This document shows positions 963 through 62,067 of a stretch of DNA of 64,000 bases, piece by piece. Under the pieces are notes generated by a model that was not told the origin of the DNA, ran no database searches, and saw only the letters and a list, made by a program, of their open reading frames with translations. This DNA is from Zootoca vivipara (lineage: Eukaryota). Position 1 is the first letter of the stretch; each line of letters starts with the position of its first letter. Made by a program: the position numbers and the translations under genes. The DNA lies in NCBI RefSeq assembly GCF_963506605.1, contig NC_083277.1, forward strand, positions 93,248,001 to 93,312,000, written 5' to 3'.

Positions 963-33904
<32,942 letters not shown>

Positions 33905-38321: not shown

Positions 38322-39399
38322 CTGTAGAAGGTCCTTGGAAGGAATCTTCTTCTGTAAAGCAAACAAACATTTGCAGGGGGGTGGGCGCTGTCACTCCATA
38401 AGCAGTTGAACCAGCAGAGGGAGCTTCCTGTAGAGTCACTGTTGCAGCAGCCTTTTTACATTTGGCAAAGCAGCACTGTGAGGGAGATGTCAAGTGAAAG
38501 GTTATTATAGTGCGATACTTGAACACAAGGGTAGGCACTTAGCATGATGAATGAGCCTTCTGCATTTCCAGAACCTATGAAGTGTAAAGACCCAGTGCGT
38601 ACTCACCTGCCAAACTCTCAGATAGTGGGAGGTCTTCAATTGTAACTCAATCCCCCACATTGCAGAAGAGGAATTCTGCTGTGGCCAAAGTTGCAAATGA
38701 CTTATTAACTAGAGTTAGTTAACTAGTACGGACTGTTTGTTCCTACTGTCAGTGCTGCTCCCTAACTTCAGACACTGAATGATAGAATTAATATGCTATG
38801 GAGTGTTTTGAATTGATACCTTTTGTATCAACCCTGTAAAGAGGTTTATTAATACAAGCAATGTAAAGAGAGGAGGGGTTTAAAGGGGTTTAAAGCAGGG
38901 ATGGGGAATTTAATAAAAAAGCATATTTATTAAATTTTCAATTTTTACAAATTCTTTTAAAATACAATCCAAAGGCATCTGTCATATCTGGTAACAGACT
39001 TCCCACCCACCCCTTTCACGGTGTTTTGGATATGTTAAAACGTTTGCAGGATCTGAAGTATAGCAACAGATGAGAATTTGTAGTTTAATAATGCAGAGTT
39101 AATGTATATAATAGATGGAATATAACTAACATAGCAGAATTCACTCTCATCCACAATCTGGTGGTGCTGATTTAGGAATGGCCTCTGTTCCCGTCACCCA
39201 TAAACATGCACGGAAAGAATATGGAAAAGTCAAGACTTTTTTTTTTTTAACGCTATTATGTTGGTCAGGCTGTCGCTTCGTTACCTGGGTCTGCAGAGCT
39301 GAATAAGAGGTATACTCCGGCCTCTGCCCCCACTCAGGTACGCTTTCGGGTCAAGTTGGAAGCTGCCTCCCCCAAGAGCGTTATAACCAATCTGACGCC

Positions 39400-40900
39400 A
39401 TCCATCCATCGCCCGGTCGTGGGCTTAGAAAATTTCAGGCGCTTCACAAGTAAGCAACAATTACTGTGCATACTATGAGATCTTTAGAAAACACTTTAAC
39501 TCAGACTCTCTTCTTAATCGTCGATTTAAATAAAATTATTCTTGCCTGAGTAGCTTTGTTTCTAGGGACGCCAATAGCTCGGGGTAGGGGGATATCAGGG
39601 GAAACCATTACGATGCGCAATAAAAATGCATTGACAATGGAACGCCGGAGGAAGCGAGGAAGAGCGTTCCTTTCGCCCCCCCCGTTCCTCCCCACGTGCA
39701 CAGTTACCATGACAACCGCCGACACAATGTTGCATCCAGAGAAGGTAGCTCTTTCCACTTTCCACCAATCGGGACCCAGAGCGTTGCCTCGGTGACCAAT
39801 CAGAAGCGGAACCCGGGAGATAGGCGCAGGAAGGCGGTAGAGAGTGCAAAGATCTCCCCGCGAGGCTGGAGGGGAGCCGTGTGGATCGCAGAACCCGAGC
39901 GAGGGGGGTTGCTGCTGCTGCTGCTTTTGTTGCTTCGGTTTGATTTTGGAGGAGAAAGCCCATTGCACTTCTAGGCCCCACCTCGGATGGACTTTGCAGG
40001 CGCACGTGCAGCTCGGCTGGGCCCGGGATGCCGATGCCGGAGGAGGGAAGCGGCCAGGCCCAAGGAAAGCTCCGCAACCTTTCCGGAGGCTCCGATTGAG
40101 GGGAAGCAACTGGATTTTTAACCCGGCGCTTTTGAATTATCTCGAGGTGGAGCCTATGGAGAGTGCAGAGCCGACGGCGGCTCTCGTTCGGCGCGGGGAG
40201 CATCTCCGAAGCCAGGCATTTGCCGAAGAAGGAGCCGAGCCAAGCTCTCCCCCTGGCGCGCTCACCTTTGGAACAGCTTATCTGCCCTAACGGAGACCGA
40301 GGACGGAAAGTACAAAAAAATTACTCCAGAACCAACCAGCCCGGCGCTGGAAGGAAGAGGAGAGAGCTCGGAGCCGCTTCCCTCCGGGTGCCGAAGATCT
40401 TGCTGCCCCGAGAATGCGATGCTAACGCCGGGAGCGATGCAAAGAAGAGGGAAGCAGATCGCCCAGACGCCATAAGTTAGGAACGCACGAAGCCAGTCAT
40501 TGGCCGGACCTATCCCGGGATAGAACCCGAGGAAAAGCCAGAAGGAACCGGACTGGGCTGCGTCGTGGCGGGGGGGGGTGTCCTCCAAAGCTAACGGAAC
40601 TGGAGGGCTAGTGAATTCGCCGGCGGGGACTGGATTCGGGCGGATTCTTTTCCTCCATGTGGAGCCACCAAGCTGGAAGGGATCTCGCAGTGGACCGGAG
40701 TTGAGCCAGCCGAGCGAGGCGCTGCCACACCCGCCCACCGCCCCTGTTCCCATGGATAGCAGCGTCGTGGCGATTATCATAGCCACCAGTGAGTACTTGC
40801 ATGACTCTCTCTCGCTCTTAAACCGGGATGGATGCGCCGGGTGGTGGGGGGTCCTCTCTCCCCAAATGAGACTGCCTCCCCCTGGCTTGGTTATGTCCCT
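39400..40900. promoter_or_regulatory. CpG-island promoter of the novel PY-motif membrane protein gene (possibly bidirectional)
   Basis: dense CpG; E-box CACGTG 39693-39698; X-box GTTACCATGACAAC 39703-39716; X-box-like GTTGCCTCGGTGAC 39783-39796; CCAAT at 39765 and 39796. Confidence 0.75.
40752..40788 (+). CDS. novel gene coding exon 1 (MDSSVVAIIIAT)
   Basis: cccATGG; in-frame stop upstream at 40521; donor A|GTGAGT, phase 1. Confidence 0.78.
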
Positions 40901-43900
40901 GGCGTTATACTTCGATGTACTCACACACATAATGTGGTTTTTGGTTTGGCACCTAGACACTGTTTATGGCCCCTTCACGGAAACTGGTATGTAGATTCAA
41001 GTGTTTGGGACCTGGTTGTTTATATTACAGGCAGGTACTGGACAAAGTCTTAGCCTTGGCTCGCATTGATGACAGCTGCAGGTTTGTGCAAGTCACAGCT
41101 TTTGTGGCAGATAGGGGGTGAGCTTAGTGATTTCCTGCTATGAATGCTGACTTAGGTCATGTTCTTAGGGGTGCTAACTTAGCTTTTGGCTTGGCATCCC
41201 TCTGCATTGTGGATTCATCGCCCGTGTTGACCTCCTGCCCTTCTTGCGGGTTACTGGAGGAGAGTTGGCATGGCTTCAGGGATTGGAAGGGCTAGTTCAG
41301 TGCATCAAGAGCCCTTTCGACACTCCCACAGAGCTGTAAAGAGCATGTAGGGATAATAATGTTCAAATCAGGACGGTGGAATCCTGTTTATGTATTTGAA
41401 TTTCCTGTGATCCCTTTTCTTTGGTATGTTTGAGTAGAAGTTCAGCAGAGAATGATGCGAGCAGAATGGTACAGCTTATCAGAGGAACTTAAACTGGTAC
41501 AGAAATATAGAAGCTTTGGAGAGCCACCAGACTGCTTCTGCCTAACAAAGGTTTCTGTCAAGTCAAAAACTTGCATGCAGTACTTCAGGCACGTCCAACA
41601 GGTAGATTGTGATCTACTGGTAGATCACTGGACACCTGTGGTAGATCACTGGTAGATCACTGGCTCCCCCCCCCAAAGAAGCTCAAGAACTTTGGCTCCC
41701 CTAAAAAATGCTCAACATTTTAGCCCTTCACCTCCCAAAAAGAGGGCTTTCCTCCCACCTCAGAAAAGCTCAACAACTCTGACCTGAACCCCTAAAAATG
41801 GGCCTTCCCCCTTCCTAAAAAAATCTCAACAACTTTGACCTGAACCCCTAAAAACGGGGTTTTCCTCCTCCCTAAAAAAAGCTTAACAACTTTGACCTGA
41901 ACCCCCCAAAAGGGGGTAGATCACTGCCAGTTTTTAACTCTGTGAGTAGATCACAGTCTCTTCGGAGTTGGCCACCCCTGCAGTACTTCTTTCTATACTA
42001 AGCAACTGATCTAATGAAAGGTATCACTTTTCCTGTTTTGGCTTTCGGTTGGATAATAATATTGTAAGAGGTTTCCTACAAGAATTACAGCTCCAAGCTC
42101 TTTTGTGAGCAAAATACTGGTTGGAATTTGAAGAGACATCTGGGGATCACCTGCTAGAGAGACATGATTGATTATTGTCAATCACCTGCTCCCCATTTCG
42201 ATATTGTTGTGCCTGTTTTTTTGGATGTGAGAGTGATACATATTTGTTGAACAAGCTTTGGAGTTTCATAGTGTGACCTCTTCCCCCCTCTGAGGCCTGA
42301 AGGCTTGTGTCTTCCACCCACATAGTAAACTCCCCATTGTAGATCATTATCAAGGCTCTCCAAAGACGCCTGCAGAGAAGGATATCCTTCATATTATTCA
42401 GGCAGAAAGTACAGCAACCTATCTGGAAGCATTACAAAAAATATTAGTCAATACGCCTTCTCCCATTTTCCACCCAAAGACGCCCAGTTAGCAACAGTAA
42501 AATCAAAATACAAAATCAAGTATTGAAAACAGAGCATCAATTAAATAAATGATGAAGCAAACAAAAATGACATATACAATTAGCCCAGTTCGACTATAAA
42601 AACGACTACCAGAACAGGCATGTTTTCAAAAGGCAGCAAATGATAATTAAAAATGGCTCCAAGGGCCAGGCTGCTCTCCCAGGGCAGAGAGTTGTGCAGC
42701 CCGAGCGAAAACTCCTGTATTCCTGTCCAACATGCCTCAGGTACAGGTGAGATACAAAGAACATGAAGTACTGTCTAGAATTTTAAAAAGAGCCTTTCTC
42801 ATCCAAAGCAAAGGTTAGACCAGCAATTCGCTTTATGGAATTGTTGGGAGTCGGAGTGATGAAATAAATTGGCTGTGTTGTCTGTATATCAGCAAGAGAG
42901 AGAGCAAGATTTGTTCATTTTTCAGTGGAAGCTCCGTTCATTGCATCCCTGTTACTTTCCCTTGTTTGGAAAAATCTGGTGTTCCAAATGGAAATAAGAA
43001 AAGGCTTTTTTAAAACCAGGGATGGGAATCTAATGGGCTTCTAGTTGTTGTTAGGTGACAAGTTCCACTGACTTAAATAAACATAAGTCCAGCAAATTCA
43101 GCACAGATGAGAAGCTCCCGCCTCTGCTCAGTTCTGCTGACTCTACATCAGGCACCCCCAAACTGTGGCCCTCCAGATGTTTTGGCCTACAACTCCCATG
43201 ATCCCTAGCTAACAGGACCAGTGGTCAGGGAAGATGGGAATTGTAGTCCAAAACATCTGGAGGGCCGAAGTTTGGGGATGCCTGCTCTACATGGTAGAAT
43301 AAGGACAGTCTCTCAGCTGCTGACAAGATTGTTCTATCAAGATCTAATCTAGTTCTAAATCTGTCTGCTGCGTGCATGATCCCTGATCCAGCATGCATAA
43401 ACCAGAATGTGTTAAAAGCCCCCCAAAATTAATTTATGTTGGAAGTGGCCAGGGCTTTCTGAGCAATGGCCCTCAAATTTGCAGATCAAATTCTTCTGCA
43501 TTAGCTTCTGAACATCCTTGTTCCGATAAAGCAGGTGGAAACACATCAGAATGATGTTTAAACTTGATTTCTCTTGCATAATCACCTATGGTCAGCAGAG
43601 CTACTTGGAAGTAAGTTGTTAGTGTGTGAGGGATGCAAACTGGAACTCCTTGGACTTTTCAAGGTGTTTTGTTGTTGTTGTTGCAAAAACGAGTGGATTA
43701 CCGCCTTAAGTGAAATAAGGATATATTACCATCTGGCTGTCATTGGAAAGCAGAAATATGAGGAATGTGAAAATTAAAAGATTAAGGTCGCAATCCCAAA
43801 CCTGTTTTTACTCCAATCCTATTAAAACCAATAGGGCTAATCTGAAGTCAGTATGTGGCGGAATTGCAGGATCCTGTGGTTGGGGGCATTTTATTATCTG

Positions 43901-46900
43901 AAGCCAAATTCCAAAACACCTTGGAAATTGGACACATCCAAGCCATGTGGGTCATGTCAGAAGAAACCAACTTCTCTGAGTCAGTTTTGCATTTTGTGCC
44001 CCAATAGTTTCTGTTGGCTGGACTAAAAATGTGCCTCAAATAACAGAATCCATAAGGAATCCTTTTGAATTCTCGCCCCCCCCCCCCCCAAAAAGTTGTT
44101 TTTGGTTTTCAGCACTTAAAACTGCTCTCCTGGATCAGTTTTATTGCAGCATCTTTACTATGACACTGGCTGCAGTAAAATAATACCCAAATAATAGAAA
44201 TTCATTTGAAATGTTTGTGATTTTCTTTTGTCCCAGGCAGTGGTGGTGGTGGTGGGGAACTGTGCCAGGGCTGAGTGGGACTGGAAGTGAGACGTGGCTG
44301 AAATTTGGGAACGGTGCTTAATACTATGTAGGCGACACAGTATCCCAGAAGGACTGTGTTGAAGGTCTGCATCTGTATTTATTTCATTTTTTAGTGGTGG
44401 GTGTTGAAAATGGGGCAGTGAGACAGGTTTAGTGCTTGAGAAACTAGCAACAGGCCAGCTGCATAGAACTCTCGGGAAAGCCAACAACATTTTACAGTTT
44501 ACCTCAAATCACCCAGATTAGATTGTGCTACAATGGTGCCACTATAGCAGAGAGTTTATACCCAAGTGAGCCGTATACCCAAGGGAACACCATATCTGCT
44601 ATTGCTGGGTGCCTAGTAAGGGGTAAAGGTAAGATCTAAACCAGGCATCCCCAAACTGCGGCCCTCCAGATGGTTTGGCCTACAACTCCCATGATCCCTA
44701 GCTAACAGGACCAGTGGTCAGGGAAGATGGAAATTGTAGCCCAAAACATGTGGAGGGCCGAAGTTTGGGGATGCCGGATCTAAACCACTGACTCTGAGCC
44801 TCTTGATCTTGCTGATCAGAAGGTTGGTGGTTCGAATCCCCACTACGGTGTGAGCTCCCGCTGCTCTGCCCCAGCTCCTGCCAACCTAGCAGTTTGAAAG
44901 CACGCCAGTGCAAGTAGATAGGTAGGTACCACTGCGGCGAGAAAGTAAATGGCGTTTCCCTGCACCTTGGTTTCCATCACGGTGTTCCGTTGAGCCAGAA
45001 GTGGTTTAGTCATGCTGGCCACATGACCCAGAAAGTTGTCTGTGGACAAACGCCAGCTCCCTCGGCCTGAAAGCGAGATGTGCGCCACAACCTCATAGTC
45101 GCCTTGGACTGGACTTAACCATCCAGGGGCCCTATACCTTTCCCTTAAGGGGCAATTTGGACCAGGGTGTGGAATCTCAGGTTCTGCTTGCCGGCTTCCC
45201 ATGGGCAGCTGGTTGCCTGTTGTGATAACGGGACACTGGATTTATTTACTTTTCTACTTGCTTAGTACCAAATCTGTGCATGGCCCTTTACAGAGAAAAA
45301 GTTTGACAGGCCTATCCCCGATGGGGCTTACGAGCTAAGGCTAGATTGCCATGACCTATGAGGAGAAACCTTGGTCATGTTTCATGTGATAGATACCCTG
45401 CTTAAGAGACATATAGACAACTGTCACCCTTTTAAAATTAGCTATATTTCTATTCTTCCTGAATAGAAAGCTTTCACATTCCTAAATGTGCAGAGATTTG
45501 GCTGAACAAGGGTATCACTCTCAAACTACTGGAGCTCTGTGATGCTCTTTAAAAAAAAAAATCCCAACAACAACTTGCCCACCAACATAGATTGATTCCA
45601 GCCATGTAAACGTGACAAGTTACTAGTCCACAAGCATGCTTCACAGCCTACCTTTCCCACAGATACTTGTGGCATATTGATGGCTTTATTTGATTAAAAA
45701 TAGCAGTTTCTCTTTTCAGTTCACAGAAACTGGAGACCATTTTTACTTGCCATAGGTGGCTGTGTACAAGTTTGGTCAAATAAAAGAATTCCTTGACCAC
45801 CTTTGCATTTCTTAGTGGTGCTGGAATGCCACCAAATCTTAGACCATAAACCTCATTGTTGTGTCTGCTGTGAGGCAGATCACAGCCAGATTCAGTTCAC
45901 TATACAGTCATACCTCGGTTTAAGTACACCTCGGTTATAGTACTTTCAGTTTAAGTAGTCCGCGGACCCGTCTGGAACGGATTAATCCACTTTCCATTAT
46001 TTTCAGTGGGAAAGTTCGCTTCAGTTTATGAACGCTTCAGGTTAAGTACGGACTTACAGAACCAATTACACTCATACTTCGGGTTAAGTATGCTTCAGGT
46101 TAAGTACAGACTTCCGGAACCAAGTGTGTACTTAAACTGTATCTGCATTGGTGTGTTTTGCTTGTTTTTTTTAAGAACTGGGCACCCGTTTATGTCTGCC
46201 AAGGGCTGGAATCTCGGTTATGAGAGAAAGGTTGAGACAATTAGGAAGGCTTGAAAAGTGTGCTTTGGGCAGCTCCTGTTGCCAGTCTTCTCCAGGAGCA
46301 TTTGGGTACCTGTTTCTGTCACTCCTAATTCCATTGTGCCCATGTAGATTCCCAGAGTCACTGCTCCTAGCTAGGGGTGAACCCGGTTAGGATGCCACAG
46401 AGCGCTTAATCGGTGGCTCTCTCCTGTCCCCGTTGCCTTTAGCCTTGCGGAGTGTACATTTCCTGCAGACTTCAGCCAGGATGTGAAGCCTGAGACCTAG
46501 TCCCAGGCTGTGTGGAACACCCTCACCTGTGTTTCCCCTTTTCTCTTCCTCGACAGCAGTTTCTTCCTCCATCTTCATCGTGGCCATTTTGGTGCTGCTG
46601 CTGCTTTTGTACCACCGGGACCCTCTGTGCTGCCAGTTCCTGTGCTCTTGCCGTTTCTTCCAGAGCCCCAGTCAGTATGTGAGTATCTCCACCTCCTTCT
46701 TCCCTGCTGTTTCAATAGGCCTCTCTGAACAACCCGCCTTGCATCCAAATGCACCCACCTACCTGCCCGCCCACCACATTTCTTTCTGCTCCAGCTGGGA
46801 TGGAAGGAACCAAGGCACCCGCCCAGCTCAGCCTTCCGTAGGGCCCCTTTACACGTTTGTACAGAATGGCCTCGGGGTTTAGGCATTATGATGATGATTA

Positions 46901-47224
46901 TTATAATAATTTGTTGCTTACTCCTGGCTGGAGAGCAGCTCAAGGCCTATTTGCAGTTCTCTCCTGCTGCGTTATAGTGTTTGCTCACCAAGACACTCCC
47001 TGGCTCCCCGCTTCCTTCCCACTCTCGTCCACCAACAAAGGCCTTTCACCTGAGCGTGTCGCCAATTGGCAGCTTTTGAGCATGGCTTGTGCTGTCAGGG
47101 GGCACGTTATTGAATTTTGAGAGCACGAGAAGGCAGTACCAGGAGTGACGCAGGTCGCCAGGGCGATGGTGATCTCCCCCTGCGCCTAAGAGAACTGCAC
47201 TCCTCCTTAACTCTCTGGCACACT

Positions 47225-47284
<60 letters not shown>

Positions 47285-50200
47285 GGCAACGCTGGAGCAC
47301 AGCAGGGAGTGCTACTGTAAGGCACGGGTAAAATACAGACAATGCCGCTCTTGGTTGCTGGTATCCTGGCAACCAGCATTATACTTTGCACAGCTCACGA
47401 TTGGAGACAGCCAGAGAGAGAGNNNNNNNNNNNNNNNNNNNNNNNNNNNNNNNNNNNNNNNNNNNNNNNNNNNNNNNNNNNNNNNNNNNNNNNNNNNNNN
47501 NNNNNNNNNNNNNNNNNNNNNNNNNNNNNNNNNNNNNNNNNNNNNNNNNNCTCTCTCTTATGCGCACACACACACACAAGCTTTTTTGATGACTGCTTTT
47601 TGAGGAGCACCTGTGGCATTTCTCTCCCCACCCCACCGTGCATTAGACAAAGGCCAAAACTTGGGCACCCTTTTAATACTTCCCCCCTTGCAGGTTCAAC
47701 CTATCTAGTCCAGCACCCTGTTTCTCACCACGACCAGCCAGAGAGAGGCCTCTTGAGAAGCCCCCAAGCAGAGCATGAGAGCAACAGCCCTCTGTCCCCC
47801 CAAACATGTTCCTTAGCAACTGGTATTCAGAGCTTCCCTTCAGCAAGGAACAAATCCCTTTATTGCTTTACATGATTTGTACTCCCGCATATTCACATCT
47901 GAAATGGCTCATGGTTAAAAAGTGCAGTTTGGCCACCAGAAGCAGTGAAGATGGCTCACTTAACTCTCCTGGAAAGGAGCCATCAGGGGTGACTTTCAGG
48001 TAATTCCTGGCAGATAGCAGGAATTCCTTTACGGCAGGGGTCTCCAAACTAAGGCCCGGGGGCCGGATGCGGCCCAATCGCCTTCTAAATCCGGCCTGCG
48101 GACGGTCCAGGAATCACCATGTTTTTACATGAGTAGAATGTGTCCTTTTATTTAAAATGCATCTCTGGGTTATTTGTGGGGCCTGCCTGGTGTTTTTACA
48201 TGAGTAGAATGTGTCCTTTTATTTAAAATGCATCTCTGGATTACTTGGGCATAGAATTTTTTTCATATATTTTTTTTCAAAATATGGTTCCCCCCCCCCC
48301 CCCCGGCTGAAAAAGTTTGCTGACCCCTGCTTTACGGGATGGATATTGGTGTAGATATAGCCACGTGGCAAAAGCAAGAGAAATCCCACGATGCTTGTAG
48401 TCCAAAACCCAACATTGATTGGAGCATTGCACCAAAGTAGCAAAGACTGAGGATTGCTTTGAAGTAACAGAAATGTGCCATGTCCCTAATGCAGCCAAGA
48501 GGGCTGTGACAAGGCTTTTGTGTATCACGTTCATGTTCAGGGACAATTGAAATGCTTCCCTAATAAAAGCTCTTGTTTCGGGGTCCAGGCATACCTACCA
48601 AGTTCCTGTGGGAGAAATAAGGGACCGGACCGGACGTAGCAGACCGGACGTAGCGCTGCCGCCATTTTGGAACTGGGCGGAGCATGCTCAGAAGCGACTT
48701 TTGATGCTGCTTTGCCCAGTTCCAAAATGGTCGCCGTGCCAGAAGTCGCATTGCAGCCATTTTGGAACTGGGCAGAGCTGCATCAAAAGTCGCTTCTGAG
48801 CATGCTCCGCCCAGTTCCAAAATGGCCTCCGCGCCAGAATAAACCGGGGAAAACAAAAAAATCCGTTTTTTCAGCTGAGAACAGCTAGAAAAACGGGTGT
48901 TTCCCGGGGAATATGGGAGACTTGGCAGCTATGGGTCCAGGTGAAGGAGGGTTGTCGCATCATGAAATCAGGCCAGAACTTAGGAACACTCAACTCAAGT
49001 CATGTCAAGACGACATGTTTGATGGGTGTGTGGCCGCTCCTGATTTTTGCTGGAGGAATTGTAGCTTTCCAGTTGCGGTATCCCCTCCTGTTGGGTACTT
49101 TCATTTTGTTTTCTCGAGACTGCCACGCCACTACCCTTGTGGGCTTGTGGCACAGGAGGACACCGTTTTGAGTTGATGGAGCGCAGGTGCAAGAGCCTCT
49201 TTAAAGTTTGCGTGTGTGTGGGAAAGTGATCATTTCTGGCCTCCAGCCATGCAGCCTCCACTATCTCAGATTACCGTGTATAGCATGCATGCATGCGGAT
49301 TATCATACGGTGGCAACCTACTGTCAAAACACTGCCCTGCCCAGTTCGCCGCCCTACCCAGTGTGGTGTTGTCGTTAAGAGCGATAGATTCATAATCTGG
49401 GGAACCGGGTTCGCATCTCCGCTCCTCCACATGCAGCTGCTGGGTGACCTTGGGCTAGTCACACTTCTTTGAAGCCTTTAGAAGGCATCTCAAGGCAGCC
49501 CTGTTTAGGGAAGCTTTTAATGTTCAATTGATTTCTGTATTTTGATATTTTGTTGGAAGCCGCCCAGAGTGGCTGGGGGAACCCGTCCAGATGGGCGGGG
49601 TATAAATAATAAATTATTATTATTATTTATTATCTCAGCCTCACTCACCTCACAGAGTGTTTGTTGTGGTGGAGGAAGGGAAAGGAAAATGTTAGCCGCT
49701 TTGAGACTCTTTAGGGTAGTGAGAAAGTGGGATATCAAATCGAAACTCTTCTTCTTCTTCTCTTCTACCACAAAGCCTTCTGCAAGTGTGTCGGTGGTCC
49801 CATGCAAGCAATGCACCCTTGGGTCTGTGAGTGGCAGCGAAGGGATTGCCTAAGTGCTGTGCAGCAGCGCATGTGGATCTGCTGGGGAGAGCTCAGGGCC
49901 ATGTGCCAGATTGGCAAGCCCTACCGAGGCAACACCCGAGCCTTGTTTGCTTGCGGCTCACCTTTCGGATCCCAGGTTTGGATTTCAGAGAGCTTTGGGA
50001 GCCGGTGCTACGTTTTGCTTGCTCCACCTGTGGAGGCTTAGCGTGAACAATGGACGTAGTTTCTCAGAGGCTCCGATGCAAGAAACCAGAAGGGAAGGGA
50101 GAAGAAGGTGAAATGCAAAACGGAGGCTTTGACTCTTGGAGACTCACATCCCGCTTTCCACAAGAATATGATACGTTGCACTGGCCGACACGTATAAATT

Positions 50201-53200
50201 GCAGTTTGCTGACCCATCACATCCCGCTTTCCTTGCCCAAAGATGTTAATTTTCCCCAGAGGAAAGGGGTTACATCTGGAGGCAGTCTGGGCTCATTTAA
50301 GTGCTACACCAAACATTTGCAAATCATTGAATTTCCCCTAGGCTCTCAATAAGGCCAATATTGCTGTAGTATAATCACTCCTTTGAAGTGAGCCCATGGT
50401 GTTGTGTGATTCCATTCAACCTGTTCCTTCTCTCTTTGGGTATCTCTGCTCCCTTCTTGCTGTTACCTGTGATGGATCTCTTCGTGGCTCTGCCTTCTGT
50501 GCCCTTTTGCAGGTGTTTGCTTAGTAGCAACTCTCTTGAGTCCAAAGGTAGAGGGAGCAATGTTAAGGAAGTAATAAGAGATATTATTTGACAGTGAAGT
50601 TAAGCAGAGAAGAATATGTTTATATAACCTATAAATAAGATTGGAAACAAAATGTAGAAAGTACTAAAGATGATATACATTATAACGCAGTTGGGAAGTA
50701 CTGGAGGAAGTCAACAATGTAAGAACATATGATAGATAATTAGAGTCTTTTTCTTTTTTCTCTCCCCCCCTCTTTTTTATTGTTGTTGTTTTGGTTTTCT
50801 ATACTCTTTTTTGTATGCTTGTATTGTACAGTGGTACCTCTACTTAGAATGGGACCCAGGTGGCGCTGTGGTTAAACCACTGAGCCTAGGGCTTGCTGAC
50901 CAGAAGGTCGGCGGTTCGAATCCCTGTGACGGGGTGAGCTCGCGTTGCTTGGTCCCAGCTCCTGCCAACCTAGCAGTTCGAAAGCACATCAAAATGCAAG
51001 TAGATAAATAGGAACCGCTACAGCGGGAAGGTAAACGGCGTTTCCATGTGCTGCTCTGGTTTGCCAGAAGCGGCTTTGTCATGCTGGCCACATGACCTGG
51101 AAGCTGTACGCCGGCTCCCTCGGCCAGTAATGCGAGATGAGCGCGCAACCCCAGAGTCGGTCACGACTGGACCTAATGGTCAGGGGTACCTTTACCTTTA
51201 CCTCTACTTATGAATTTAATGCGTTTCGAACGCACATTCGTAAGTCAAAAAAATTTGTAAGTCGAATCCCATTGGAATGCATTGGGAGAAAAAATTCGTA
51301 AGTCGAAGCGACCCTATCTAAAAATTCGTAAGTAGAAAAAATCCTATCTAAACCGCATCCAAGATGGCGGACGGAGCTCCATTCGTAAGTAGAAACATTC
51401 ATAAGTAGAGTTATTCGTAAGTAGAGGTACAACACTGTATTCATTTTCAGGTTTGTGTTTTTGGTGTTTTTTTCCTTTTTGTATTTTTAAGCTTATAAAA
51501 TAAAAATATTCCATAAAAAAACAAAGAAAAACAAAGGTAGAGGGAGCAAGAGCTGAGATTGTACACTGTACTGCAAAGTCCTTCAGCTGCGCACGCCGGG
51601 TGTTGCTGGACCATACAACTCCCATGGTCCCCCATTGGCTAAGCTGGCTGGGGCTGATGGGAAACTGTAGTCTTAACAACACCTTTGAAGAGCACTGCCG
51701 TATCCCCTTCCTGTGAGAGGAGGACTTCCTCTTGTTCTCAAAACACTCCTCTCTAGGAGAAGCAGTGTGTAGAGCTCAGGCATAGAGTGGGAAGTCTGGG
51801 AAAGACCAGCGCTAGGAATTTCTGTAGATGATTCACTCTTATCTACAACCAAGTGGCTTTTATCAGGGCTTCAGGCCTAATGTCAGAATCCCATATACCA
51901 CAGGCTGGGGTGCTTTACTGCCGCCACCTAGGTGAATCATTATGTACACAGACAACATCCTATGCGAGTGGGAAGGATGTTTCAGCTGCTGCAGTTAAAT
52001 ATCCCAAATAACCACGCATCAAAACAAACAAACAGACACTGTGCTGGATTACATATCTGAGGCTAGCAGCAGACAGGAGGTAGATTGGGATCTGCTGGGG
52101 TAGTTTGCAGTCTGTTGACAATGGTTTCCGACGCTCAAATATTTACAGGCAGCAACAACGAAAAAGGCTTGCCTACTGCCACTCGCTTTCCCTTTAAAAT
52201 TAGGCTGAGGAAACAAAGGAAAAGCTTGGGAGGAAATGAAAGGTTTTTGTGTTTGTGAAGGGGACAGCAAGTTCAGTTCCTGCCCTGAAAACAAGTTGGC
52301 TGTGCCTCACTCAGGTGCACGGTGTTCTTTTAAGTTTCTTCCCCCATCAGCCACAACTTTGCACTTGGGGTTTTTTCCTCAGGTTTCTAGTAAAGAAGAT
52401 GGTAGATCCCTCAAGCCAGGAGCTCCTCCCTCATTCCTTCCTGAGAGGATGGAAGCCACCTCTGGTGTCCTCTGGCTGGTTGCCCAGTCATAACTTTCTG
52501 TTGTTCTCGGAGGTCTCTTCACGGACTAGGATTGATATGATTTTGCCGTATACCAAAAGTGGGTTTAGCTAGGAAAGTGTAGCTTGCCGGAAAGCTCTTG
52601 GCTCCAGAAAACTGTGCCCTGAAGAGTGATTCAACGACAGCAGGCTGTCGGAGAAAAAAACAGCTTGTGAGCGATTGTTTTCGGAGATGAAACTTTTCAG
52701 TCAGCGCTCTTGTCACATGAACACGAAGAGGCTTCGGCTAATTGAGATTTGCAGGCATTCCGCTTCTACGAAACACGTGAGGTTCGGAAAGGCACCTCAG
52801 AAAGATTTTTAAAATAAAAAATTAAATAAACACTGGTCTCTGGACAGCGTGGTTTGATGTAAAGGCCCTTCTGCTGCCCTGACTCCTAGGAGGACGCACG
52901 GCCATCTTGTTTATGCCCCCGAGCCAGTGATTTACCTTGAGGCACAAGCTTTGGCCTACGAGTGAGGAGCCTGTGAGCCTCCAGGTGTTGTTCCTTTCGA
53001 TCTGCTCAACAGAACACATTGCCAGCTTGCTGAACGCGCACCCTGGAGTTGCCCGAGAGGAAAGCTCGGCTTGCATTTTAATTTTCCTTCCTTTCTTTCA
53101 CTCCTCGTAGGATTGCCCCCCTCCCTACTTCAGCAACAACCAGCGTCTGGTGGGACCACCGTCGGGGACGCCGCATCTGGAAAGCGCAGCTGAAAACCCT

Positions 53201-55393
53201 GCTGTCCAGGTGAGGGGGAGACTTTCCTTCCTGAAGTTTGGGCGAATCACCTGTAAAGAGGAGCGTGACCTGCGCAGGAGAAGGGGGCTTGCTTCAGGAG
53301 GCCAGCCAAACACCAGGGTGGGAGCTGGAACCGCTGATGATGGATCCCCGGGGGTTTTTCCCTTCTAGGCAAGAGGTTGGGTCAATGAAGAGGTGGAAGC
53401 AGGGAGAAAAGGCACCAGATCCATGGGCCTGGTGGTTGTGGAAACCACTGGGCAAGGGGCACGAGGCTTCCGCAGGCCCAGCATTTTCACAGTGTGGCTT
53501 TTATGGCTTTGCACGCAGGCGAATAACACATTTCGACACCCAAAGAAGGAAGCATGGAGGGTATTGTGCCATATGCAAGAACTGGCATCGGTTTGCTTTC
53601 ATCCGAAGGCCACTTCTTCTCCCATTATAGGCGAGCAGCGGATTTTGTCGTCAAGCCAATTCCTAGAACGTAAAGTGGGAAGGCAACAACGGACGAGCCC
53701 CCGAGCTGGGTGTATCATCCGGGTGCATTTGTTAATGGTGTCCCTCTGTGCGTCTAGGGAGATGAGCTGTTCTGTGTCGGACCCCCCAGCAGCTACCAGC
53801 TCCCACCGTGGGAGCAGCCGCGGCTGCCGAGCTACGAGAGCGTGCGGAAGAAGGATCGCCAGCGGGAGATCCACCAGATGATTGCCGAAAGGTTCGGCTT
53901 GTGGGCGGAGATCTCACCAGAGGTAAGCAATCTTCAGCAAATAAATAAATAAAAATAAAACAACACCCAATAACCCTCCACCCTACCACTATCTTAGGGT
54001 ATAGAATATTCTGCTGGCAGGTCTCTAATTATAGAACTTGCCCAGAGGTTCCTCCTCCTCCTCCTTGTGATACCTTGAGACCGGCTCTATCTTTCCAATG
54101 GCTTTTTTATCTTGGAAGGAACACAGTGTTCCAGGAGGCTCCAGCACTAAGCCACTTGTTTACATTCCTTCTGGCTAATGATTCATCCTCTATCTTTTGG
54201 AAAGAAGTGCTTCTGTCTTCCACAAGGAGCCAAAACAGACACGGTGGCAGCCAGGGATAAAGCCTCTTAAGACAGTGCAAAGTGCCTTGCCATGCATGCC
54301 CCTGGCACTGTAGGAGCTGTTTTGTTGCTGCCTGCCAGGGTCAGAGGAGGGTTCTCACACCAGAGGGCCCTCTGCCCAGGATCCCCTTTGGGCTGGAGCT
54401 AGGAATGTAGGAAACCGTGGGCCCAGAGACCCCAATGTGGTCCTCCAAACTTCTGACTGGCCTCCAGGACTCTGCCCAGGCCATGCAGGTCCTTGCTTTG
54501 CACCTTTTTGAGTGTTTTTGCCTGGGTGGAATGTGTCCTTCAACTCTGATAATGCCTCTTTCTTGCCTGGATGGAGGATAGACAGGTGCGCAGAAACTTG
54601 CCTACTGTACAAGAGCAAGATTTAACATCTACTGCTCTGCCCCTTTTTGCCTCTGGCTTCATCTGCCGCTCCTGCCATGTGGCCCTTGGAAGATGGCCCA
54701 GAAAGAAATGATACCTTTGGGTGTAAAAAGGTTCACTGCGTCTCTGCTGTAGCCAGGCAGTGATTCCCCCCCCCCCAAGAGACTTGAAGCTGGCATAATG
54801 GAGGAAGCATCAGTGCTTGTACACACATCCTTTTTTTCCTCTCCACTCGCACGTTTTGTGTGTATAGTGCTTCCAAAGTCTGCAGAACTCATTTGACCAT
54901 AGATTTTTATAGTGTACATGCCCCTCCCCTCTCCATTTCTGTCCTCCCAAGGTAGGATAGGCTGAGACACTGTGACTGGCCCAGGGTCACCCCGTGAGTT
55001 TCACGGCTGAGTGGGGATTTGAACCTGGGTTTCCCAGGTCCCAGGACAGCACTCTGACCAATATACCACGCTGGCTCTCTAGATGAGGATGGGACAAATG
55101 AAACCAATGCTTACAACACAGGAAACCTCTATGAAAAACAAGGCCAGTTCTTTTTTAACAAAAAAACAAAAAACCCACCTACTTCCACAGCTTAAAACAT
55201 TCTGAAGCCCATTTCAAACAGGTTTAAATTTACAGTGAATAGGGTAGTTTGAAAAGGCAAAAAATAAAAAATAATTGCTTGTTGGATGCTGGTGTTCCAC
55301 TCAAATGGCAGCTATACTTGGTGTGTGTGAATTAGCACTGGCTCCTCTAAGGATGAATAACAGTAATAATAGTAAATAATAGTAATAATAATA

Positions 55394-55424
<31 letters not shown>

Positions 55425-58175
55425 TAGCTTTATTATTTATACCCCGGCCATCTGGCTGGGTTGACCCAGCTACTCTGGGCAGCTTCTAACACGTATAAGG
55501 TAAAGGGACCCCTGACCATTAGGTCCAGTTGTGACCAACTCTGGGGTTGCGGCGCTCATCTCGCATTATTGGCCGAGGGAGCCGGCGTACAGCTTCCAGG
55601 TCATGTGGCCAGCATGACAAAGCCACTTCTGGCGAACCAGAGCAGCACATGGAAACGCTGTTTACCTTTCCGCTTGGAGCGGTACCTATTTATCTACTTG
55701 CACTTTGACGTGCTTTTGAACTGCTAGGTTGTCAGGAGCTGGGACTGAGCAACAGAAGCTCACCCCGTTGCGGGGATTCGAACCCACAGCGCCACCCGCG
55801 TCCCTCAAACACACATAAAAACTTAATAAAACATCAAAATGTTAAAAACTGCCTGATACAGGGCTGCCTTCGGATGTCTCCTAAAAGTTGTGTAGTTCTT
55901 TAGCTCCTTGACATCTGAGGGAAGGGTGTTCCACAGGGAGGGTGCCACTGCCGAGAAGGCCCTCTTCCTGGTTCCCTGTAACCTCACTTTACGCATTGAG
56001 GGGACCGGCAGAAGGCCCTCGGTGCCAGACCTCAGTGTCCAAGCTGAATGATGGGGAGGTGGCGATGCTCCTTCAGGTATACAGGGCCGAGGCAGTTTAC
56101 AAACTCAGCTGGGTTGTAAATGTCATTGAACTGGGTGGGGAATTTATTTCTGAGTGATTGATTTCTGAGTAGCCATGTTGAAGACTCGAGCCTTGCTCTT
56201 GATTCTTCTAATGGACTTGAGCCTTACAAGTACTCTATCAAAGGAGCAATAATGGTAGTCAGCACTCTCGCAACCACTTACCATTTATATTCCCTACTTA
56301 AAGTGCTTTCAGCAGATAGGTGAGCCTTCATAACAACCCGCAGTCTAGATAAGGAGAGGCCCAGAGCGGATAAGCAGGAGCACGTGTTGCAATGCATGTT
56401 ACAAGCTGAACCTTCCTGGCTTTGGATCTTTGTACTTGGATCGCACACCTGCCCTCGGACAGTATTCGTGATTTCTCCTTCTCCCTTTTTTCCCTGCCTG
56501 ACTTTGAGATTTGTTTTCCCTGGGCTCTGAACCCTGAGAGATGGGTAGGCAAGGAAGGTTTCTGAGTTTCTTTGGGATGCTCACCACCCGGGTAGTTTGA
56601 CAAGGTAGAGAAGGAAATAAACAATTGTCTGACTTTCAGAAGGCACACGGGCAGCATATAAATAAGTTGTTGTTGTTGCTGCTGGCTCTGAGTCCCTGTG
56701 TTAGGACAGGAAAATGGCTTCCTTAAATAAAGGCATAGAAAGGAATTTCCACCCTACAGGTCAGGTAGCCTAGACCAGGCATCCCCAAACTGCGGCCCTC
56801 CAGATGTTTTGGCCTACAACTCCCATGATCCCTAGCTAACAGGACCAGTGGTCGGGGAAGATGGAAATTGTAGTCCAAAACATCTGGAGGGCCAAAGTTT
56901 GGGGATGCCTGGCCTGGACATCTTTAGGCCATCAAATCACACCTGGCTCAGACTAGGGTAGGGCAGCCAATGCATATTTTGTGTTGTGTGTATTCTGTTG
57001 GACAGACAGACAACCCACAAAGTTGCCATATTTATATATTCAGGGGGAAACACAGACATAACAAGGTGCAAGGCCAGTGAGAGACTGCGTGCATCCTTTG
57101 TCTTTAATTTCATTGCTGGCATTATTGTACTATATTTAACTTTTGACCTACAGATACCTCTAGTCTCAGTGTAAGGGTAGGTGCAAGGTTGCCAGAATCT
57201 ACTGGCACATTTGTAATCCAGGCCACTGTTTTAACATGTGGCGCCTTCATTATATACACCTTTAGGCACCAAGCAAAAATGTTCCTTTTTAACCAGGCTT
57301 TTGGTTGATCCAATTTACATCCTATGCCCTTTTAAAATGTAGGGTTTTTTGGGGAGGGGGAACTATTGGGTTGTTGTTTCCATTTTTATTACATATTTTG
57401 CGGTTTTATATCTTGAATTTATTGTGTGAACCGTCCTGAGACCCCCCTGGGTATAGGGCGGTATATAAATTCAACAACAACTATATGGGTCTCTCCTTAG
57501 GTGAATCCCACCTTTCTCTTACTTATTTAGGCTGCAATCCTTTGTCCACTTGCCTCTGAGTAAGCCTCAGTTAAACCACTAGGACTTACTCGTGGGTAGA
57601 CCTGTCTAGGAATGCACCATTAACCGGTCAATCTGTGGCCTTCCAAACTGGGGTGACGGTGTGGGGGTGCACATATGTTATTGTTTTCGTTCGTTACGTT
57701 ACGCATTTTTGTGCTTTTTATTTTGTCAACTGCCGTGTGATTCTCAGCCGAAGGGCGAACCGGCTCAGCTTCTGCCTCGGGAGCACACCTATGGGCCGTG
57801 AATTGTGCGATGCAGTTGCATAAGGGGCGAGGCTCGTGGGAACCAAGCTGATGGGCGCATGGACATTGGGCAGGGTAGGTGTGGTGAAGCTGGCTGGTGG
57901 GTGAAGCTGGCACAATAACTGAGCCTTGGCACACATTCAGGGGGAAAACATTTGCATAGGCCAAGGCGGGCAGACCCGTTCTCGGTTCTCTCGGGAGGCG
58001 GTATAACAAGCTTCTTCTTCTTTTTTAGTTACCACCACCTTACGAGCAAGCCCTGAGGTACCCTGCAACCTTACCAGGAAATGGAGCCGGGTCGGAGTTG
58101 TCGGCCGGACAGAGCTTGCCGGACATGCTGCAAGCTTCGCCGACTTACCATGCTCAGAGGAACACTTCGGTGTAG
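40752..58175 (+). CDS. uncharacterised single-pass membrane protein with three PY motifs and a PDZ-binding C-terminus (5 coding exons, 189 aa)
   Basis: phase-compatible exons with strong splice sites give MDSSVVAIIIATTVSSSIFIVAILVLLLLLYHRDPLCCQFLCSCRFFQSPSQYDCPPPYFSNNQRLVGPPSGTPHLESAAENPAVQGDELFCVGPPSSYQLPPWEQPRLPSYESVRKKDRQREIHQMIAERFGLWAEISPELPPPYEQALRYPATLPGNGAGSELSAGQSLPDMLQASPTYHAQRNTSV*. Confidence 0.85.
41586..41980. mobile_element. hAT-type element with internal ~58-bp tandem repeats
   Basis: perfect 8-bp TSD cagtactt; repeated ctcaacaactttgacctgaacccc units; repeated gtagatcac subterminal motifs. Confidence 0.8.
43149..43284. mobile_element. 136-bp hAT-type MITE
   Basis: same family as 6049; TSD ctctacat. 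Confidence 0.88.
44642..44777. mobile_element. 136-bp hAT-type MITE inserted in the head of a Sauria SINE
   Basis: TSD atctaaac. Confidence 0.88.
44778..45145 (+). mobile_element. Sauria SINE
   Basis: B box ggttcgaatcc, core gtcatgctggccacatgac, tail accttt. Confidence 0.85.
45905..46139. mobile_element. Tc1/mariner-like MITE
   Basis: TA-cagtcatacctcgg start; internal repeats of ggttaagtac. Confidence 0.6.
46557..46678 (+). CDS. novel gene coding exon 2 (TM helix + Cys cluster)
   Basis: long pyrimidine tract then CAG|CAG acceptor; phase 1 matches exon 1; VSSSIFIVAILVLLLLLYHRDPLCCQFLCSCRFFQSPSQY; donor TAT|GTGAGT. Confidence 0.85.
47225..47283. repeat. (TTTC)n microsatellite
   Basis: direct reading. 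Confidence 0.95.
47423..47550. other. assembly gap (N run) flanked by (GA)n and (CT)n
   Basis: run of n. Confidence 0.99.
48035..48329. mobile_element. hAT-type element with internal ~55-bp direct repeat
   Basis: caggggtctccaaact...gtttgctgacccctg; perfect TSD ctttacgg. Confidence 0.82.
48591..48932. mobile_element. probable non-autonomous DNA transposon with nested inverted repeats
   Basis: imperfect TIR atacctaccaagt/acttggcagctat; palindromic core 48661-48826. Confidence 0.55.
49358..49760 (+). mobile_element. tRNA-derived SINE (same family as 14588) interrupted by a LINE 3' fragment (~49478-49630)
   Basis: SINE halves flank a segment homologous to 23955-24100. Confidence 0.65.
50829..51437. 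mobile_element. Tigger-like MITE (as 25360-25570) interrupted by a Sauria SINE
   Basis: TIR cagtggtacctctactta...taagtagaggtacaacactg; cctctactta duplicated on both sides of the SINE. Confidence 0.8.
50851..51202 (+). mobile_element. Sauria SINE (full length)
   Basis: gggacccaggtggcgctgtggttaaaccac...cctttacctttacct. Confidence 0.9.
53111..53209 (+). CDS. novel gene coding exon 3 (PPPY)
   Basis: ttttccttcctttctttcactcctcgtag|GAT; DCPPPYFSNNQRLVGPPSGTPHLESAAENPAVQ; donor CAG|GTGAGG. Confidence 0.85.
53758..53922 (+). CDS. novel gene coding exon 4 (LPSY + predicted helix)
   Basis: ctag|GGA; GDELFCVGPPSSYQLPPWEQPRLPSYESVRKKDRQREIHQMIAERFGLWAEISPE; donor GAG|GTAAGC; CpG-retaining coding-like composition. 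Confidence 0.88.
55355..55425. repeat. (AAT)n microsatellite (LINE tail)
   Basis: direct reading. Confidence 0.9.
55496..55805 (-). mobile_element. Sauria SINE nested in a minus-strand LINE (L2-like) 3' fragment (~55355-56085)
   Basis: SINE similarity; host sequence resembles the reverse complement of 23955-24100. Confidence 0.8.
56776..56911. mobile_element. 136-bp hAT-type MITE
   Basis: TSD gcctagac/gcctggac. Confidence 0.86.
58029..58175 (+). CDS. novel gene coding exon 5 (PPPY + PDZ ligand)
   Basis: cttcttcttcttttttag|TTA; LPPPYEQALRY...HAQRNTSV; tandem stops TAG TAG. Confidence 0.85.
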   Translation, partial: LPPPYEQALRYPATLPGNGAGSELSAGQSLPDMLQASPTYHAQRNTSV

Positions 58176-59299
58176 TAGGCTGCAGGTCGGGTCCCCCACC
58201 CCCCACCCCACCTCGTGTCTGGGACAATGCCAGAGTTTGGGGTGTGGGTTTCACTTGCACAGCAGCAGCCTGCCAAACCTTTCCAGGTGCAAAAGGAACT
58301 GGGGGGAACTCTCCAGAGCCGACACAAAGCCAGCCAAGTCTTTTTTGTGTTCCCCTTTCCCTTCCTTACTAGTATTACAGTATTGAGAGGGAATGCTGGG
58401 AGATTGCCAGCTCTTTCTGGAACTGAGCCTGAGGACAGCTGGACGGTGCTGTGTACACCACTTGGGGGAAGCTGTGGCCTCTCTCTTTTGAAGTATCCAA
58501 GACCGCCGGAGGAGCTTCCAAGAGTCTCGCTCTTAGGGACTCCTCTCACACAGGGCAGAAGGCCGGAATCAGTTACCCTCAGGGCTGCCTAGGAATTGAA
58601 AAAGCCACATAGAAAAAACCCTATGGAGATTTCAGTCTGCAGGGTCAAACATTGGACCAAGCCAGCAAGAGGCTCCCCTTGTCATTTTTCAAGAGGCAGG
58701 CCAAGACTTCCTACTCAAAAGGGCATCCTTGGAGGGAAGCACCAGCAGCCATTACACTAAAAAACAACAACAGCAGTGGGAGCTGCCAAACTTGCAAAGT
58801 ATTAAGCCTGAACAAGAGAACGTTTATTTTAGTCTCTGGTTGTCTGACTTAAGGAGTGATGCTTATCAGGGATTGCAGCTTCAAGTGACAGAATGAATGT
58901 ATTTTGCCTCCAGCTGTTTCTACTGATTCTCGGACAAATTCCAACAGGGATTTCTCTCTCTCTCTTCTCTTTCAAATGCTGCAGGGCAGTTTTGAAAGTC
59001 CAAATAGGACAGCAGAAGGCAGAATCTGGAGCTTCTGCAGGGAATTCCCTCCCCTCTCAGGAGTCTGAAGCAGCCCGAGGTTTTAGGGGCCAAGCCATAT
59101 AACCAAGAAAGGGTTTCAGGCAGAGACAAGAGGGATCTCCCCCAGGAGGGGAGGAAGGTGGTGATAACTGATAGCTATCACTCCAGTCATTGTTTACTCT
59201 ACTTGATTGCTCTGTCAGTTCGACTCTTTGATTTTTGTTATTTGGGTGGTTGCTTTTTTTTGTATTTGACAAAGACGCTTTTAAAATGTTCCTAATGCC

Positions 59300-59305
59300 A
59301 TTAAA
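59300..59305 (+). terminator. putative polyadenylation signal of the novel gene
   Basis: ATTAAA after a U-rich stretch, ~1.1 kb downstream of the stop, followed by GU-rich sequence. Confidence 0.4.
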
Positions 59306-60151
59306 ACTGAAACAATCCGATCAGAAAAATATATATGTTTTGGGGGCCTCCTTTCACAGTCCAACTTTGTGAGTGTATTCAAATGCTTGGGGGGGGGGGC
59401 GTTTAGCCAAATTCCTTTGTGTGGAATTGAGGTGGTCTTTTGTTTCATACAGGTTCCAACCTATAATTATGGCGAGTGCAGACACGTAACACTAAGGCTG
59501 AATACACATTATTTTATTCTAGAATCCATGGAGACTGAGTTATTTTTCCTCCCCTACGAACTCCCCACACTAGCTAGCCCCGTTGCATATTTTTTTGCGC
59601 CTGAAAAGTGCTACTTGACAAACTAGTTTGAATTCCAGGAAAAAAGCTCACTGCAGATCAATTCTGCATTATTACCATTAGAAAACGGGTGTAGGCACAG
59701 GGGAACTTCCCTCCCTTTCCACACACCCCAAATCTCCTTGGGCATTCCCTCCCCCCTCCCCGCCCAAGCCTCTGTTGCAGATATCAGCAGTGCAGAAGGT
59801 GCACAGAGGCAGGGGAAGTTGTGTTGTGTTGCCAAAGACCTCCCATGCAAGCAGCGATTTTGGTGGATTCAACTTTGTGTCTACTGCATTCATTCATGCA
59901 TGCATTGCATCATCCAGTTTCACTTTCCTTACTAGGTTTTTGTTCCCCCCCCCCAAATGCTGGTGTTTCCTGTGTAGACGGCTGCATGGTTTCAGATGGT
60001 GGCATTTCCCCTCCCACCTGAAAATCAAAATGGAGGGAGCTGCTACAACCCAGATTTTTAAAAAAGAATGGATTAAATCCCCCAAAAAAGAAATGTGCCG
60101 GAGGCAAAAGCAAACTGAGGGACACAACCAGACACACAGGGCAGACTAGAG

Positions 60152-60469: not shown

Positions 60470-60845
60470 AGTAAAGGTAAAGGATCCCTAGATGGTTGTC
60501 CAGTCAAAGCAGACTATGGGGTGCAGCGCTCATCTCGCTTTCAGGTCAAGGGAGCCAGAGTTTGTCCACATACAGCTTTCCGGGTCATGTGGCCAGCATG
60601 ACTAAACCGCTTCTGGCGCAACGGGACACTGTGATGGAAGCCAGAGCGCAGGGAAATGCTGTTTACCTTCCCGCCGGAGTGGTACCCATTTATCTACTTG
60701 CACTGGCGTGCTTTCGAACTGCTAGGTTGGCAGGTGCTGGGACAGAGCAACAGGAGCTCACCCCGTTGCAGGGATTCAAACTGCCAACCTCTTGATCGGC
60801 AAGCCCTAGGCTCTGTGGTTTAGACCCCAGCGCCACCCGCTCCCG
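60470..60845 (-). mobile_element. Sauria SINE
   Basis: similar to the other copies. Confidence 0.86.
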
Positions 60846-61860: not shown

Positions 61861-62067
61861 TCAGACCATCTCGACCAACTTGAAGCTCCCCACCTCTTTA
61901 GTGGGAATGACGTTGATGAAAGTTTTGTACAGCACAGCTCCTTTGGGTAACTGGCAGATCACCTCTGTGCTTTCCTTGCTGCGGGGAGGCGGCACGTAGA
62001 CTTCCTTCGTGTACCGCACAATCCCATCTTCAAGCGCGTAGAGCGACTTGTTGCGGCCTATTCCCAC
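61861..62067 (-). CDS. MRPL27: mitochondrial ribosomal protein L27 (bL27m), last exon; upstream exons lie beyond the window
   Basis: [68 protein letters not shown]; acceptor ttaatag|GTG; synteny with XYLT2. Confidence 0.95.

Follow-up and report, generated by a model that had tools for sequence, protein, structure and literature searches.

A transcribed five-exon gene between xylosyltransferase and L27 genes in Zootoca vivipara belongs to an unnamed bony-vertebrate family with the layout of a PY-motif membrane adaptor

Five short exons in the genome of the lizard Zootoca vivipara, lying between a xylosyltransferase gene and a mitochondrial ribosomal protein gene, raise the question of whether they form a protein-coding gene and, if so, to which family the product belongs and what it might do. 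The window, which is the whole stretch of 64,000 nt that was analysed (contig NC_083277.1, positions 93,248,001 to 93,312,000, forward strand), had received an initial annotation from its letters alone, in which an unrecognised gene was proposed whose product would be a membrane adaptor with a cysteine cluster, PY motifs and a PDZ ligand. The locus is a transcribed five-exon protein-coding gene, the Zootoca vivipara orthologue of an unnamed bony-vertebrate family. The features on which this account relies are listed below in window coordinates, together with the identity of each exon translation to P0103, the orthologue from Hemicordylus capensis.

30063-30539, plus strand: upstream neighbour, the last part of a xylosyltransferase gene (Pfam Xylo_C, E 1.7e-24)
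39250-41000, no strand: CpG island, likely promoter and exon 1 (GC 0.49-0.61; CpG observed/expected 0.7-0.94, versus 0.1-0.3 in both flanks)
40752-40788, plus strand: coding part of exon 1; start codon, N-terminal stub and start of the transmembrane segment; ends in phase 1, donor CCA/GTGAGT; 10/12 residues identical
46557-46678, plus strand: exon 2; transmembrane helix and juxtamembrane Cys cluster; 39/40 residues identical
47423-47550, no strand: assembly gap (run of N)
53111-53209, plus strand: exon 3; first PPPY and a variable linker; covered by RNA; 28/33 residues identical
53758-53922, plus strand: exon 4; invariant family core, with LPSY and then a predicted helix; 51/55 residues identical
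58029-58175, plus strand: coding part of exon 5; second PPPY, tail ending in -NTSV, stop (147 nt including the stop); 42/48 residues identical
past 58300, plus strand: 3′ UTR; a contig of run X1 continues 143 nt beyond 58300
61861-62067, minus strand: downstream convergent neighbour, an exon of the mitochondrial ribosomal protein L27 gene (Pfam Ribosomal_L27, E 0.0013)

Translated one by one, the five exons (37, 122, 99, 165 and 147 nt) are all stop-free and have compatible phases, yielding 189 codons and a stop; the exon translations were used singly and never joined, and the fold described below was computed on the orthologue P0103 and an alignment of relatives (A1). The donors of introns 1-4 read GTGAGT, GTGAGT, GTGAGG and GTAAGC, and all four acceptors consist of a pyrimidine tract ending in AG. 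These translations and GT-AG borders, along with the spliced RNA, bear out the five-exon, 189-residue model that had been proposed, and every element of its motif list is found: a hydrophobic segment, CC..C.C, PPPY, LPSY overlapping YESV, PPPY and a terminal -TSV, with one PY motif in each of the last three exons. Its placement between XYLT2 and MRPL27 likewise holds, as Pfam identifies the xylosyltransferase upstream and the L27 exon downstream within the window; the L27 score falls below the curated cut-off because only an exon fragment is present. A pigeon relative mis-named 'xylosyltransferase 2 isoform C' is the sole hint of the neighbourhood elsewhere.

Position 40752 holds the first in-frame ATG, and the frame upstream of it is open and carries no further ATG. 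Most other squamate models have their start methionine 17 codons earlier (MTQPSE...), where the Zootoca vivipara assembly reads TTG (40701-40703). Translation here therefore starts at the conserved internal methionine of MDS (40752) or at a non-AUG codon; the MDS methionine is the start also in the hare and in one transcript-derived protein (P0111, 189 aa). A short out-of-frame upstream reading frame (40657-40704, from an ATG at 40657 to a TGA) would belong to the 5′ leader if transcription begins further upstream in the CpG island.

Three raw-read RNA-seq runs that carry the same species label (X19-X21) were mapped on 53000-58300, with about 6% of each run read; a further small run, X1, was kept as contigs, and its 'RNA' nature is only a guess. 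Exons 3, 4 and 5 are covered 5-50x in X20 and X21, with a depth of 18-29 on exon 4, whereas X19 gives almost no cover of them, so that expression differs among the samples. Between 53000 and 58300 the introns are without read cover except at repeats. Moreover, the first mates of all exon reads lie on the minus strand, the usual sign of plus-strand RNA in stranded libraries, which agrees with the GT..AG orientation of the splice sites. The predicted joint between exons 4 and 5 (53922/58029, GT..AG) appears exactly where expected: X21 shows it in 46 reads, and X20 in 24 reads plus an X1 contig with T>C at 58029, a synonymous difference from the assembly.

The predicted joint between exons 3 and 4 (53209/53758) stands in its strand, frame and 548-nt skip, but not in the position chosen by the aligner, which placed it at 53202/53751 with non-canonical TG..TG borders, 7 nt to the left; 548 nt are skipped either way. 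The seven letters at the two borders (tgtccag versus cgtctag) agree in 5/7, which makes the placement ambiguous with the frame unchanged, and which we offer as the reason for the leftward choice. A Q-G pair spans this border in all orthologues and fits the canonical placement. A stop codon at this joint was also considered and rejected: it would need the intron-side 'tag' in the mRNA, the orthologues all read Q-G, and canonical GT-AG splicing gives no stop. The exon 1/2 joint is placed by orthologue continuity only and is a predicted border to that extent.

The assembly gap lies wholly in intron 2 (46679-53110) and touches no exon, with 744 nt separating it from the exon 2 donor and 5.5 kb from the exon 3 acceptor; given this distance from the splice sites, the reading frame is independent of the gap length. 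A coding exon hidden in the gap is unlikely, because the orthologues are continuous across the exon 2/3 border (...SPSQY/DCPPPY...) and because, in the X1 contig (831 nt), the four letters upstream of exon 3 agree with the end of exon 2 at all but one position, and 148 nt more lie beyond them. A GAAA/GGAA-type microsatellite (47150-47320) leads up to the gap, and a second run of N occupies 827-958. Copies of a squamate SINE-like repeat are found in intron 4 (55478-55831 and 56717-57070) and elsewhere (about 44700-45200, 50840-51150 and 60496-60800). They show very deep RNA cover on both strands, with hundreds of reads and loose ends of unrelated sequence, and these reads consequently derive from many genomic copies and not from the locus. 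A search of 40000-59500 against Rfam gave no match, and the SINE-like repeats have none there.

Several features of the exon borders point to isoforms. The acceptor of exon 2 is a tandem cag/cag (NAGNAG, 46554-46559), and use of the alternative acceptor at 46560 would give an 'ATI SSS' form; both 'ATTVSSS' and 'ATISSS' occur among predicted squamate isoforms, a pair that the tandem acceptor explains, so that the alternative is conserved, with a protein length of 188-189 aa. Further, the equivalent of exon 3, which is 99 nt long and in frame here, is skipped in predicted gecko and blackbird isoforms (P0127 and P0126), with loss of the first PPPY. The exon 4 donor is followed at once by a low-complexity stretch (53923-53970), rich in A and holding several AATAAA, that the RNA read mapping passed over, and four relatives (P0001, P0005, P0125 and P0160) have predicted read-through tails past exon 4, which lack both the final PPxY and the C-terminus. 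Intron retention or early polyadenylation after exon 4 could yield a short isoform.

The relatives show how widely the gene is distributed. With exon 4 alone (55 aa) as the query, phmmer against 1.84 billion representatives returned 67 clusters (best E 1.5e-29, 48 below 1e-10). The full-length relatives measure about 190-260 aa, and they go by no other names than 'uncharacterized protein LOC...', 'hypothetical protein' or si:ch73-364h19.1; examples are Hemicordylus capensis LOC128341604, Sceloporus undulatus LOC121920741, Alligator LOC106737524, Microcaecilia LOC115473407 and Vombatus LOC114049304. They come from fish (bichirs, bowfin, eels, salmonids, many other teleosts and the coelacanth), amphibians (three caecilians) and sauropsids (turtles, crocodilians including the alligator, many birds and at least 10 squamates), the squamate members including Hemicordylus, Sceloporus, Varanus, Pogona, Phrynocephalus, Lerista, Heteronotia, Sphaerodactylus, Liasis and Candoia. 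Mammalian relatives with an intact core are found in echidna, wombat, bilby, Tasmanian devil, hare, ring-tailed lemur and marmoset. The gene is thus less novel than the initial annotation had it: automated pipelines predict it in dozens of vertebrates, the suggestion that it was retained in sauropsids and lost in mammals fails on the echidna, marsupial, hare, lemur and marmoset sequences, and a sauropsid-only distribution is ruled out by the fish, amphibian and mammalian relatives. The family has been kept for more than 400 million years in bony vertebrates.

The exons of Zootoca vivipara fit this family closely. Their translations agree with squamate members at 83-90%, with a total of 170/188 residues identical to P0103, and the exon 1 translation shares 10-11/12 residues with squamate orthologues. 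Compared with the unnamed family as a whole, the gene has the same exon content, length, transmembrane helix, CC, LPSY-helix core, PPxYE and tetrapod -NT[AST]V ending; nothing essential differs from the squamate LOC models, the upstream methionine being replaced by TTG in the Zootoca vivipara assembly. The five exons are thus almost certainly a real gene and a member of the si:ch73-364h19.1 / LOC family. In a fragment from a Pygathrix langur (P0022), two core positions that are elsewhere invariant have changed and there are no transmembrane exons, which hints at relaxed constraint or decay in catarrhine (Old World) primates. Together, P0022 and a Logan fragment (P0026) have the core substitutions E>K, R>Q and K>N, and their transmembrane exons are missing.

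Differences between the RNA and the assembly bear on whether the frame is under selection. Seven of nine listed exonic differences are synonymous (six at third positions and one at a Leu first position), the other two being H>R at 53175 and A>P at 58152; the nine are the best-supported differences only and make a small sample. With an expected synonymous share of 0.23-0.29, this corresponds to P = 0.001-0.004 for 7/9, and in each of the other two frames only 1/9 would be synonymous. This excess counts against the reading that no functional protein is made, the exons being a frame open by chance, a transcript without coding function or a pseudogene in decay, for which one could cite the near-zero expression in X19, the loss here of the upstream start codon of other squamates and the catarrhine monkey fragment altered at otherwise invariant sites. 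Against the same reading stand the splicing seen as predicted, 90% identity to a member of another lizard family over all five exons, a core invariant for more than 400 million years, and a conserved internal methionine that serves as the start in several lineages. It is effectively refuted, and we consider it highly improbable.

The conserved residues are concentrated in a small part of the protein. Across 24 members from bichir to lizard (A1), there are 22 invariant columns, all of them in LPSYESVRKKD.Q..IH..I..RFG and PP.YE; exon 4 matches the former, the family core, letter for letter. The near-invariant family module is LPSYESVRKKDRQ..IH..I..RFG, with PPxYE downstream, and the rest of the family layout, with one N-terminal transmembrane helix followed by CC and then a PPxYE after the core, is supplied by exons 2 and 5. 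Over 175 full-length relatives, LPSY is present in nearly 100%, a juxtamembrane CC after the transmembrane helix in 171, a PPxY no more than 45 residues after the core in 162, and an [LP]PxY between the transmembrane helix and the core in 147; this upstream PY motif has been lost in some relatives, for example in the hare (PPPC) and in several teleosts. The frequencies of LPSY, CC and the downstream PPxY indicate constraint on these motifs, in support of the initial annotation. The four-cysteine cluster proposed there is present in Zootoca vivipara and its CC pair is general, but the third and fourth cysteines are tetrapod-specific and absent in fish. Similarly, the C-terminal -TSV has the form of a PDZ ligand but is not a family-wide feature: a class I PDZ ending ([ST]x[VIL]) occurs in 46 of the 175 relatives, as tetrapod NT[AST]V forms, while many teleosts end in -LPV.

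AlphaFold2, run on A1 with P0103 as its first row, predicts a transmembrane helix at residues 20-50 and a second helix from Y129, the tyrosine of LPSY, to F148 of the RF pair (pLDDT 70-78), with the remainder disordered (mean pLDDT 57.8). In particular, LPSY is joined directly to an amphipathic helix of about 20 residues, YESVRKKDRQREIHQMIAERF. The single predicted N-terminal transmembrane helix supports the proposal that the protein crosses the membrane once, after a very short N-terminal stub. The N-terminus would be outside and the tail cytosolic, an inferred orientation with which the N-glycosylation sequons (NTS, NSG, NST and NAT) in the stubs of caecilian and several fish relatives are in keeping.

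No known family accounts for this sequence in the searches made. Pfam scans of the four longer exon pieces, six relatives and the 24 aligned relatives, at E up to 10, gave no family match and only sub-threshold transmembrane-type noise (Cadherin_C_2, EphA2_TM and Syndecan). There was no match in exons or relatives to Comm (PF15957), WBP-1 (PF11669; WBP1 / VOPP1) or TMEM52, nor was there one to PMEPA1_helical (PF27646) or BEAN1_helical (PF28336) in the Pfam copy searched, which may not hold either of these recent models. A profile search of solved structures produced only a chance match to a transmembrane peptide (E 3.2). In a profile search for distant paralogues, the best 120 of 389 matches were all family members, and BEAN1 and PRR7 are absent among the phmmer and profile matches listed. 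Protein language-model look-alikes of the whole protein were BEAN1 (0.94), PMEPA1 (0.92), TMEM52B (0.91), PRR7 (0.89) and Commissureless (0.88), which are a lead only; the core alone scored 0.83, which is chance level, and had no look-alike family. The protein resembles the PY-motif class of single-pass membrane proteins, but none of these searches placed it in a named family.

Comparison with members of that class is instructive in both directions. Drosophila Commissureless and its proposed vertebrate counterpart PRRG4 are small single-pass proteins with LPSY and PPxY in the tail, which recruit Nedd4-type ligases and drive endosomal sorting. The lizard protein is likewise small and single-pass with LPSY and PPxY in its tail; unlike Commissureless, it has no Pfam Comm match and carries after LPSY a helix without a detectable counterpart, and unlike the PRRG proteins it has no Gla domain. 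PMEPA1 and LDLRAD4 are single-pass, NEDD4-binding membrane proteins with PY motifs, and they share this architecture with the lizard protein, but their PPNR Smad-interaction motif is absent from all five exons, and no sequence similarity was detected in the phmmer and Pfam searches. BEAN1 and PRR7 span the membrane once in a type III-like manner and combine PY motifs with a short N-terminal stub, and PRR7 adds a juxtamembrane Cys cluster and a -TAV end. In layout, the short stub, single pass and PY motifs of the lizard protein resemble both, and its Cys cluster and PDZ-type end resemble PRR7. The NDFIP1/2 proteins differ more, since they have three transmembrane helices after their PY motifs, whereas here a single helix lies N-terminal to the motifs.

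PPxY and LPxY bind class I WW domains, and LPSY is the sorting motif of Drosophila Commissureless. By this analogy, the protein would reside in the plasma membrane or the membrane of endosomes, N-terminus outside, its LPSY and PPxY would dock WW-domain proteins, most likely HECT ligases of the NEDD4 family, and its invariant helix would hold a further partner or cargo. In this way it would serve ubiquitin-dependent sorting as a small adaptor or decoy, comparable to Commissureless/PRRG4, PMEPA1, BEAN1 and PRR7. S-acylation of the CC cluster is possible, as is binding of PDZ domains by the tetrapod C-terminus. The motifs make it plausible that the protein is a membrane adaptor for WW-domain proteins, and a real family gene with such a role is the best explanation overall, one that we hold to be reasonably probable. 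We would give even chances to WW-domain docking being the main activity; that its WW partners are specifically HECT ligases is a more tentative suggestion.

The invariance of the core reaches far beyond what a WW ligand needs, so that function may reside in the helix, with the PY motifs in a secondary part. On this alternative, the PY motifs and the YxxV would be only turnover and endocytosis signals of the protein itself, and the helix would do the job; the protein might, for instance, be a small subunit that regulates a membrane channel, receptor or enzyme. Conservation indeed peaks in the helix and the basic cap at its N-terminal end (I, H, I, R, F and G are invariant) and not in the flanking prolines; the helix is also the only confidently folded cytosolic element, in a core without a look-alike family. 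However, LPSY before the helix and PP.YE after it are equally invariant, which would be unusual for a mere degron, and we regard this alternative as unlikely.

A second alternative keeps the gene and the protein but changes the partners to Hippo-pathway or scaffold proteins (YAP/TAZ, MAGI, WWOX and KIBRA), which would be tethered or sequestered at the membrane. PPxY motifs do not discriminate among the WW domains of HECT ligases, YAP/TAZ, MAGI, WWOX and KIBRA, and MAGI-type scaffolds, which combine PDZ and WW domains, would fit the tetrapod -NT[AST]V ending. LPxY motifs, by contrast, are best known for NEDD4-family ligases. The zebrafish clone gene si:ch73-364h19 is listed, with no function given, as the in-situ probe cb911 in a study of dorsal-forerunner-cell genes controlled by Vgll4l and Yap/Taz (PMC6759317), which is the only paper found to name it. 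Control of transcription by a factor is, however, no evidence of binding to it, and the 'si:ch73-364h19' of that paper may or may not be the '.1' gene; Hippo or scaffold partners are, on balance, improbable. In the literature searched, no functional papers on the family were found, and likewise none on its binding, localisation or acylation.

Returning to the membrane adaptor for WW-domain proteins, a broader proposal can be made, which we put forward as possible but doubtful. The family may represent an undescribed class of vertebrate membrane adaptors in which LPSY and the amphipathic helix would form a composite docking site for a WW domain and a second partner. The site would govern how a particular cargo is sorted or how stable it is, possibly in Yap/Taz-regulated programmes such as the zebrafish left-right organiser, and the family appears to be decaying in catarrhines. 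Such a decay would explain why the family has never been studied.

The gene itself is already predicted in many genomes and is ordinary as an annotation result, and the interest rests on the family and not on the Zootoca vivipara locus. What makes it worth keeping is conservation for more than 400 million years, with 22 invariant positions, in a family for which no Pfam model, gene name or functional paper was found. Overall, PY-motif single-pass proteins such as Commissureless, PMEPA1 and the NDFIPs are strong regulators of receptor trafficking and signalling, which makes another conserved member a reasonable target for functional study.
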